DNA from: Orbicella franksi
Taxonomy: Eukaryota
NCBI GenBank assembly: GCA_964199315.1
Contig: OZ116698.1
Coordinates: 5,208,001-5,272,000, forward strand
DNA length: 64,000 nucleotides
Direction: 5' to 3'
A program made the translations under genes and the position numbers. The stretch's first letter is position 1; every line of letters starts with the position of its first letter. The notes beneath the pieces were generated by a model that worked only from the letters and a program-made list of their open reading frames with translations, ran no database searches and was not told the DNA's origin. This document shows positions 17,596 to 18,066 of this stretch, one piece after another.

Positions 17596-18049
17596 TCTCA
17601 ATCTGGGTTGTGGGTCTTTTGTCTGTCTGAATCTAGACAGTTGTCTTTTGTCTGCTCGAATCTGGGCAGTAGCTCCATGCTCCTAATCTGAACGTTTTTT
17701 GTTTTTGTGTCCTCTCGTGCTGGGTCTCCTTTATTGGTGTACTGCACAGAGGCTTGTATCAGTTCTGTTTTTGTCTTGTTATGTTTGTCATTACGTCTGT
17801 CCCGTGATCGTCTTTGATGTCGTGTAAAGCCCGTGTCTGTTGAAGTGTGTTCAATTTCTGACCGAGGTAGGCAGGGTTCGATTCCCCGGCGAAGTTGGCG
17901 AACTGGCTACGTTGAGTAGGGGTTCCCTACCCTAGGTGGACCATCTAGATGGCTTTGCACTCCCAGCCACTACGATGGATGAGCTTGTAGGCCAGCAAGC
18001 ATTGCACTGCCCTTCGGGGAGCTTGGCTGTCCACCTTAAATATAAAAAA

Positions 18050-18066
18050 ACTTACCTGATGCGGGA
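18050..18066 (+). ncRNA. U1: Second U1 5' fragment (nt ~3-19), probable target-site duplication
   Basis: ACTTACCTGATGCGGGA directly after the family A poly(A); one mismatch to 6173-6189. Confidence 0.7.

Follow-up and report, generated by a model that had tools for sequence, protein, structure and literature searches.

Results

A coral snRNA/5S gene array with U1-inserting Tx1 elements

The window (the whole stretch of 64,000 nucleotides that was analysed) is a coral snRNA/5S gene array with invading LINEs of the Tx1 clade. Two U2 and two 5S genes were recognized in it by Rfam. Two Tx1-clade elements, hereafter B and C, correspond to the two copies that had been compared in a first-pass annotation of this DNA. 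These elements and the adjoining sequence comprise the following features:

6171-6430 and 12440-18050, + strand: Tx1-clade element B (copy 1 of the first-pass annotation), split by the insertion of an LTR retrotransposon
17596-18050, + strand: 3' UTR of element B, following the end of ORF2 at 17595; A-run, then CTTACCTG
18051-18330, + strand: U1 nt 4-18 (CTTACCTGATGCGGG), after which a further tandem copy begins with a truncated leader that is homologous to 6171-6420
59835-59991, + strand: tail of element C (copy 2 of the first-pass annotation), of type II according to the type II alignment; internally deleted element

Element B extends from 6171, where it opens with the U1 5' end (ATACTTACCTG), to 18050; its ORF1 and ORF2 are both broken, and the ORF encoding the C-terminus of ORF2 stops at 17595. 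Element C is heavily deleted, with remnants of ORF2 joined at 59455/59457. Membership of the Tx1 clade is supported by domain content: Pfam found APE, RT and zf-RVT domains in the ORF2 homologue, using the intact ORF2 of locus L002, and Pfam and fold prediction placed RRM(s) and a CCHC knuckle in ORF1. The LTR retrotransposon lodged in the leader of element B (6430-12440) has near-identical LTRs of about 180 nt (approximately 6434-6609 and 12250-12430); its pol-like ORF, of 1505 aa, spans 6999-11516 and has a C-terminus of the integrase type. A motif, GGTCTCCTTYATTGGTGYACTGCAC, recurs in the upstream portion of 3' UTRs, in the U1 type as well as the U2 type (17723-17750, 5425-5450 and 5560-5590), with several copies in L002:7370-7530.

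The first-pass annotation had taken the element for one that inserts into U1, which was borne out by the sequences downstream of the tails, several of which are directly followed by U1 genes. At loci L002 and L021 a complete U1 gene (Rfam scores of 141.7 and 116.3 bits, respectively) comes after the same junction as that at the 3' end of element B, the A-run of the tail being joined to U1 at nt 3/4, in place of U1 nt 1-3. About 18 of about 46 tail flanks begin with CTTACCT, that is, with U1 or a U1-derived leader. The element inserts into U1 genes. The other flanks are non-U1 sequence, and the AUUGCAC boxes described below are still kept in the tails that precede them; such flanks imply either that target specificity is not absolute or that some copies were mobilised in trans. 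Several of the non-U1 tails (L008, L063, L037, L075 and L124) are followed by a shared sequence, …AAATCTTTCGCCTTT…AAAGATTTCCGTGGAGGAGAACA, possibly a further target that is itself repeated, or else a repeat lying nearby. The same linked layout, with a U2 gene, a spacer, a U1 promoter and 5S nearby, was found in other corals (L003:1843-2430; L009:72-263; L115:5713-5832), and insertions of both U2-type and U1-type Tx1 elements are present in these linked U2/U1/5S layouts. Short non-autonomous elements that lack ORF2, and in which a leader is followed by ORF1 (intact, 382-419 aa) and the tail, were observed at L021:638-2221 and L003:8304-10049, as tandem insertions in U1 genes; L012, L028 and L041 probably hold ORF1-only elements as well.

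Related tails from other corals

Searches with the C-terminus of ORF2 gave hundreds of coral homologues. Five lookups of ORF2 homologues yielded seven more tails, including some from Stylophora pistillata and Oculina patagonica. In addition, metagenomes were scanned with a pattern describing only the T-arm (GGTTCGANNCCNNNNNGAAGTTGG), without AUUGCAC, by which about 50 further coral tails were found among bacterial chance matches. Since the box was not part of this pattern, the scan is unbiased for AUUGCAC. Most of the 50 distinct tails considered below came through the box-free pattern, from Stylophora, Oculina and coral metagenomes. In the metagenome-scan set the invariance of the T-loop and of GAAGTTGG is partly by construction; both are present in 9/9 tails that came from the protein search or from the window. 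Many of the aligned rows are close copies, which makes counts of cells larger than the number of independent events; each helix was represented by at least eight distinct stem variants.

The tails fall into three architectures, types I, II and III. In type III, tblastn with ORF2 did not join the tail to an upstream ORF2, and these tails appear to belong to ORF2-less elements. In poly(A)+ RNA from a related coral, 0-2 reads lay on the tail, and 39-56% of the tail's sampled words were present in the assemblies of six RNA runs, to which DNA carry-over may have contributed. A contig assembled from run X1 (depth 6) joins 17900 to 18044 of the window, skipping the 3' domain; a tail variant without boxes may exist.

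The two window tails

All strings quoted in the first-pass annotation were found where it had placed them. The 28-mer at 17874-17901 is identical to 59846-59873 at 26/28 positions, a match that window shuffles did not produce, and both tails carry CATTGCACTGC (18000-18010 and 59954-59964) before a common end, CCTTAAATATAAAA. Outside these conserved islands the tails of elements B and C have drifted strongly, with an overall column identity of 72%, gapped. Two further CCTTAAATATAAAA-like matches, at 68 and 41153, were rejected as tails; they fall within another LINE, in the YADD region of its RT coding sequence.

ATTGCAC is not enriched across the window (13 matches, 9.8 expected), and single-sequence folds of both window tails had folding energies no better than those of shuffles (z = -1.0 and -0.7). 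The minimum free energy structures differ between the two tails and were not taken as evidence. Consequently, the case rests on the comparison between copies.

Architecture of the tail

A 5' domain is common to the three types and consists of a P1 helix and a T-loop hairpin, together with GAAGUUGG, which is invariant, and an arm in which a small hairpin may or may not be present. It is followed by a 3' domain, in which types I (element B) and III have an outer helix around a hairpin 1, bearing box 1, and a box-2 arm, and type II (element C) has an outer helix around a single hairpin. The tail of element B is laid out as follows:

17866-17931, + strand: 5' domain, with P1 strand GGTAGG (17866-17871) paired to CCTACC (17926-17931)
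17872-17888, + strand: T-loop hairpin, with a 5-bp stem and a 7-nt loop, UUCGAUU (17877-17883)
17935-17940, + strand: GGTGGA, which forms the 5' strand of the 3' domain's outer helix and is paired to 18030-18035
17941-17978, + strand: hairpin 1, with loop UUGCACUCCC (17955-17964) and a degenerate box 1
17993-18029, + strand: box-2 arm, comprising helix a, closing pair C18000:G18021, AUUGCAC (18001-18007), a UG spacer and an inner hairpin
18030-18050, + strand: outer helix, 3' strand (18030-18035), followed by CUUAAAUAUAAAAAAA, the A-rich end, which is single-stranded

In element B, three features lie within P1: the T-loop hairpin, GAAGUUGG and a variable hairpin of small size (17907-17919). 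The 3' domain agrees with what the first-pass annotation had drawn: an outer helix GGTGGA/TCCACC, a hairpin with loop UUGCACUCCC, and the arm AAGC|AUUGCAC|UG-CCC-UUCG-GGG-A-GCUU, the inner hairpin of which (CCC-UUCG-GGG) occupies 18010-18019. Element C has the P1 helix, a T-loop hairpin at 59844-59860, the 5' strand of the outer helix at 59906-59911 and the heptamer at 59955-59961; the 3' strand of its heptamer hairpin is decayed (59962-59978). The CCTTAAAYAYAAAAA end is common to the tails. It corresponds to CCUUAAAYAYAAAAA, in which a short A-run is encoded and AAUAAA is absent, and the box lies 38-61 nt from it.

Two of the boxes named in the first-pass annotation had to be revised. The ATTGTAA of element C, read there as a second box, occupies a place where at least 20 relatives read GTCCATCGTACCGCC; this sequence provides the 3' strand for both the box hairpin and the outer helix, and element C has lost a G and decayed. 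The first box of element B does lie in a hairpin loop, as had been described, but is itself degenerate (UUUGCAC), lacking A1. In the type I/III alignment box 1 reads CAUUGCAC in 9/23 tails and is deleted in three; a change of A1 to G costs U1A about 5 kcal/mol (PMC2203988).

Conservation and covariation

The proposal that AUUGCAC is conserved across copies was upheld in the enlarged set: exact ATTGCAC was found within the last 70 nt of 46/50 distinct tails, 38-61 nt from the A-rich end, and the nucleotide before the heptamer was C in 53/54 cases. The exceptions are single substitutions (ATCGCAC, ATCACAC and ATTACAC), interrupted copies and L052, a complete tail without the box hairpin that is nevertheless located at a CTTACCT site. 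Heptamer columns were invariant or at least 90% conserved in the type II and type I/III alignments, those of the latter (23 tails) being invariant with one exception.

The flanking helices, for which a covariation check had been suggested, change while remaining paired. Helix a of the box-2 arm was 96.7% paired in the 23 type I/III tails, with compensatory changes at 7/8 pairs, and the closing pair of box 2 was C:G in 22/23. The outer helix was 92.8% paired in the same 23 tails (3/6 pairs compensatory). Hairpin 1 is less well supported than the box-2 arm, its helix being 72.6% paired, with 8/13 pairs compensatory and a C:G loop-proximal pair in 16/20, and its box is often degenerate. Taken as a whole, the type I/III structure was 93.5% paired in register versus 40-51% when the partners were slid. 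The corresponding values for type II were 93.1% versus 49-56%; in this alignment P1 was 90% paired (3/7 pairs compensatory), P2 and P3 were 99% paired, and in the box hairpin 4/6 pairs were compensatory and the closing pair was C:G in 21/24.

Presentation of the heptamer differs among the types. In type II the loop was exactly 10 nt long and closed by C:G in 19/23 heptamer-bearing tails, element C being among the 23 and not the 19, and is made up of AUUGCAC and three variable nucleotides (spacers UAC, UGC, UUC, CAC, UGG, UGA and UAA); the stems are mostly of 7-9 bp and reach at least 7 bp in 16/23. In types I and III the heptamer lies in a one-sided internal loop of 7-10 nt. Single-sequence folds gave the heptamer a mean unpaired probability of only 0.65-0.72, against a background of 0.40. 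The tail loop is under clear purifying selection. As a separate observation, the loop of coral U2 stem-loop IV (window 5907-5930) is UAUAGCACUACCU, the vertebrate one being UAUUGCAGUACCU, and the loops of type II tails (AUUGCACUAC) have GCACUAC in common with that of coral U2.

The T-loop hairpin

The hairpin of the 5' domain has the features of a T-arm, with a 5-bp stem and a UUCRANY loop. One pair of its stem changed from GC to AU in 10/23 tails, and CG changed to UA in 4. Because the stem covaries, the hairpin is read from these sequences as an RNA-level structure in a separate 5' domain, possibly serving as an RT-recognition or tRNA-elbow-like module.

The first-pass annotation had pointed to the Pol III B-box, and the hairpin could accordingly act at the DNA level as a B-box/tRNA-derived promoter or TFIIIC site, the tail being a tRNA-related SINE-like module. 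GGTTCGANNCC does fit the B-box consensus, and ARAGORN called a tRNA-Asp at 59778-59869 that uses the T-loop hairpin. This call was discarded as a false positive, being absent at every related tail: at 39 other loci ARAGORN made no tRNA call on the tails, where no full cloverleaf with an acceptor stem was found. Moreover, an A-box-like match (one mismatch at most) lies upstream in only 1/50 tails, TTTT runs, a Pol III stop, occur downstream in 27/50, and the compensatory changes that keep the stem paired indicate selection on the RNA. An Rfam scan by E-value assigned no family to either window tail and no tRNA family to the tails, returning only a mascRNA-like match at E=1. Taken together, these observations make a Pol III role extremely improbable, and the B-box interpretation was abandoned.

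Discussion

The box as a candidate site for a host SNF/U1A protein

U1A contacts AUUGCAC and the closing C:G pair, the heptamer being displayed in a hairpin loop in U1 stem-loop II or in an internal loop in U1A's own pre-mRNA (PMC2203988). The reported U1A/SNF site is a 10-nt loop, C[AUUGCACNNN]G, or the equivalent internal-loop site (PMC5992148, PMC2203988), and Drosophila U1 stem-loop II reads C[AUUGCACCUC]G (PMC5992148). The majority of metazoans possess only one SNF protein, and C7 is common to all metazoan stem-loop II sequences (PMC4114683). The U1 of the coral itself has C-AUUGCACUUG-G in stem-loop II. When the tails are set against these sites, the first-pass view of the boxes as U1A-type sites holds for the determinants in sequence and structure, namely the heptamer, the closing C:G, single-stranded presentation and a variable 3' spacer; it does not hold for the protein, the reader expected in a coral being of the SNF type and not vertebrate U1A.

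We estimate at about one in two the probability that the loops of the tail are mimics of U1 stem-loop II bound by the host SNF/U1A protein. The last 190 nt or so of the RNA form a two-domain structure ending at the A-rich 3' terminus, where reverse transcription starts. Its 5' domain carries the T-loop hairpin, and its 3' domain, closed by the outer helix, shows one or two loops of the U1 stem-loop II kind, on which AUUGCAC, seated on a C:G closing pair, would bind the first RRM of a host protein of the SNF/U1A family. In this way a conserved nuclear host protein would be loaded onto the 3' end of the retrotransposon RNA.

The motif is unchanged between lineages whose ORF2 C-termini are 49-86% identical and whose ORF1 RRMs are 30-37% identical, and it has moved between hairpin-loop and internal-loop contexts. 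This constancy across diverged ORFs and loop contexts fits a small, slowly evolving host reader. It also bears on the possibility that the loops are read by the element's own ORF1p, with its two RRMs and CCHC knuckle, or by the ORF2p RT, as in 'stringent' LINEs; the identity with the U1 loop would then stem from capture of U1 stem-loop II, or from an element protein that also recognizes U1 RNA. Such a reading has a plausible agent in ORF1, the N-terminus of which was predicted by AlphaFold2 as tandem RRMs (pLDDT 85.5), matched UP1, Sxl and HuR in Foldseek (E ~5e-6) and is followed by a CCHC knuckle. The ORF2-less derivatives, which keep an intact ORF1 and the same tail, are what would be expected for a cis element recognized in trans mobilisation; their tails indicate that the tail is required in cis for mobilisation and do not indicate its reader. 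According to work cited in PMC4494074, 3' tails common to SINE/LINE pairs are recognized by the RT. However, with ORF1 RRMs differing by 63-70% between lineages, co-evolutionary drift would be expected where an identical 7-nt loop and closing pair are found, and the exact match to the host site (7 nt, closing pair, 10-nt loop and variable spacer) would be a coincidence unless it is mimicry. Furthermore, U2-type Tx1 elements, of the same clade, have tails without the motif. Reading by the element's own proteins is the main rival to mimicry, and one that we regard with some doubt.

A passive origin was also weighed, in which the boxes are a U1 relic left by read-through transcripts or template switching and have no present function. 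Transcription of the element takes place beside U1 sequence, U1 nt 1-18 are already part of the leader, and SINEs mobilised by Tx1 that have snRNA-derived parts are known (PMC4494074). Nevertheless, similarity to U1 stops at the loop, the stems being completely different from those of U1; the stems covary around a loop that is invariant across Robusta and Complexa corals and the three tail architectures, and a neutral relic would decay like the surrounding UTR, which has drifted strongly between the window tails. We consider a relic very unlikely. Two other ideas were dropped: a UGCA kissing loop, which would involve only 4 bp and does not account for A1, U2, C7 and the closing pair being invariant, and pairing of tail cDNA with the stem-loop II region of the U1 gene, in which only 8 nt would pair.

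Possible roles in 3'-end control and target finding, and the form of the RNA

If mimicry of U1 stem-loop II is granted, binding of SNF/U1A might protect or define a non-polyadenylated 3' end, or might route the RNP to the nucleus or retain it there. The first-pass annotation had proposed that a recruited U1A could either control the 3' end of the element or help it in reaching U1 loci, and had suggested a check of whether the box tracks with U1-targeting families. As for tracking, the boxes, together with the T-loop, are absent from three U2-type tails (window ends 5786 and 35190, and the L003 end at 2078), which fits tracking with U1-targeting, in what is a comparison of one clade with another only. 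As for reaching U1 loci, tails that are not followed by U1 keep their boxes, which argues against the box as a device for finding the U1 locus. Between these two roles, control of the 3' end is more plausible, and finding of U1 loci is unlikely. Inhibition of poly(A) polymerase by U1A is documented for the vertebrate protein and, for that reason, may not apply to a cnidarian SNF.

An extended version, in which the whole element RNA would be a disguised U1 snRNP, seems unlikely to us. The RNA would start at U1 +1 from a U1 promoter, with U1 nt 1-18, and would combine an Sm-like site, in one leader family, with the SNF/U1A loops at its end. Assembly of Sm and SNF proteins could then open the snRNP maturation and import route back to the nucleus, near the U1 targets, and the RNA might perhaps also use the association of snRNP factors with snRNA gene arrays. 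One leader family was seen to contain U1 nt 1-18, a GGCCGGAGGCC hairpin and AUUUUGG, which resembles an Sm site (window 6171-6220 and 18051-18095; L002:2082-2130; L021:638-690); the leader families at L003:2424, L028, L052 and L102 are without an Sm-like site.

Relation to known systems

In type II tails the likeness to U1 stem-loop II, the site of U1A/SNF RRM1, is exact, with a C:G-closed loop of 10 nt in which AUUGCAC comes first and three variable spacer nucleotides follow, and coral U1 has the same loop as these tails. Unlike U1 stem-loop II, the tail has stems unrelated to U1, and its predicted site belongs to a 3' UTR and precedes the end of the 5.6-kb retrotransposon RNA by about 40-50 nt.

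The polyadenylation inhibition element (PIE) of the vertebrate U1A pre-mRNA is similar in that a one-sided internal loop, seated on C:G, displays the heptamer near the 3' end of a 3' UTR, and type I/III tails likewise have two boxes. The two-box PIE geometry evoked in the first-pass annotation was nonetheless not recovered. In PIE the boxes are about 4 bp apart in one stem that binds a U1A dimer, whereas in the tails they are about 48 nt apart in separate arms, box 1 is dispensable, type II has a single box, and no canonical AAUAAA follows.

As in the RT-recognized 3' stem-loops of stringent LINEs (UnaL2/L2, R2 and SART1) and in LINE/SINE tails, a structured tail abuts the priming site, and, as in LINE/SINE common tails, non-autonomous derivatives share it. 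It differs from the stringent LINEs in having a loop identical to the site of a host snRNP protein and invariant across highly diverged RTs. Keno, a Tx1 element specific for U2 snRNA genes that occurs in vertebrates, lancelet and cnidarians, belongs to the same clade, also targets a multicopy snRNA gene and inhabits the same arrays; U2 fragments are present in the window and the arrays are occupied by both Tx1 types. Unlike Keno, the elements described here target U1 at nt 3/4, and U2-type tails have neither the T-loop nor the boxes. No named U1-specific Tx1 was found in the literature searched. Finally, T-loop and tRNA-like 3' structures such as viral TLS and mascRNA share with the tail a UUCRANY 7-nt loop on a 5-bp G:C-rich stem, and the invariant GAAGUUGG beside the T-loop resembles a D-loop. 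Unlike them, the tail has no cloverleaf, acceptor end or CCA, its arms are in a different order, and its T-loop is about 150 nt upstream of the RNA end.

Significance

Where LINEs have structured 3' tails, the usual view is that the RT of the element itself reads them. The element described here targets the gene of an snRNA, and its tail carries the protein-binding loop of that same snRNA exactly. The literature searched contained no paper joining AUUGCAC to a retrotransposon and no description of such a tail. If SNF/U1A binds it, this would be the first case found of a retrotransposon that recruits a core spliceosomal snRNP protein by RNA mimicry, and would provide a natural example of the U1A hairpin as a portable module. 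The tail would offer a compact, easily mutated system for the formation of 3' ends in site-specific LINEs, nuclear re-entry and assembly of the priming complex.
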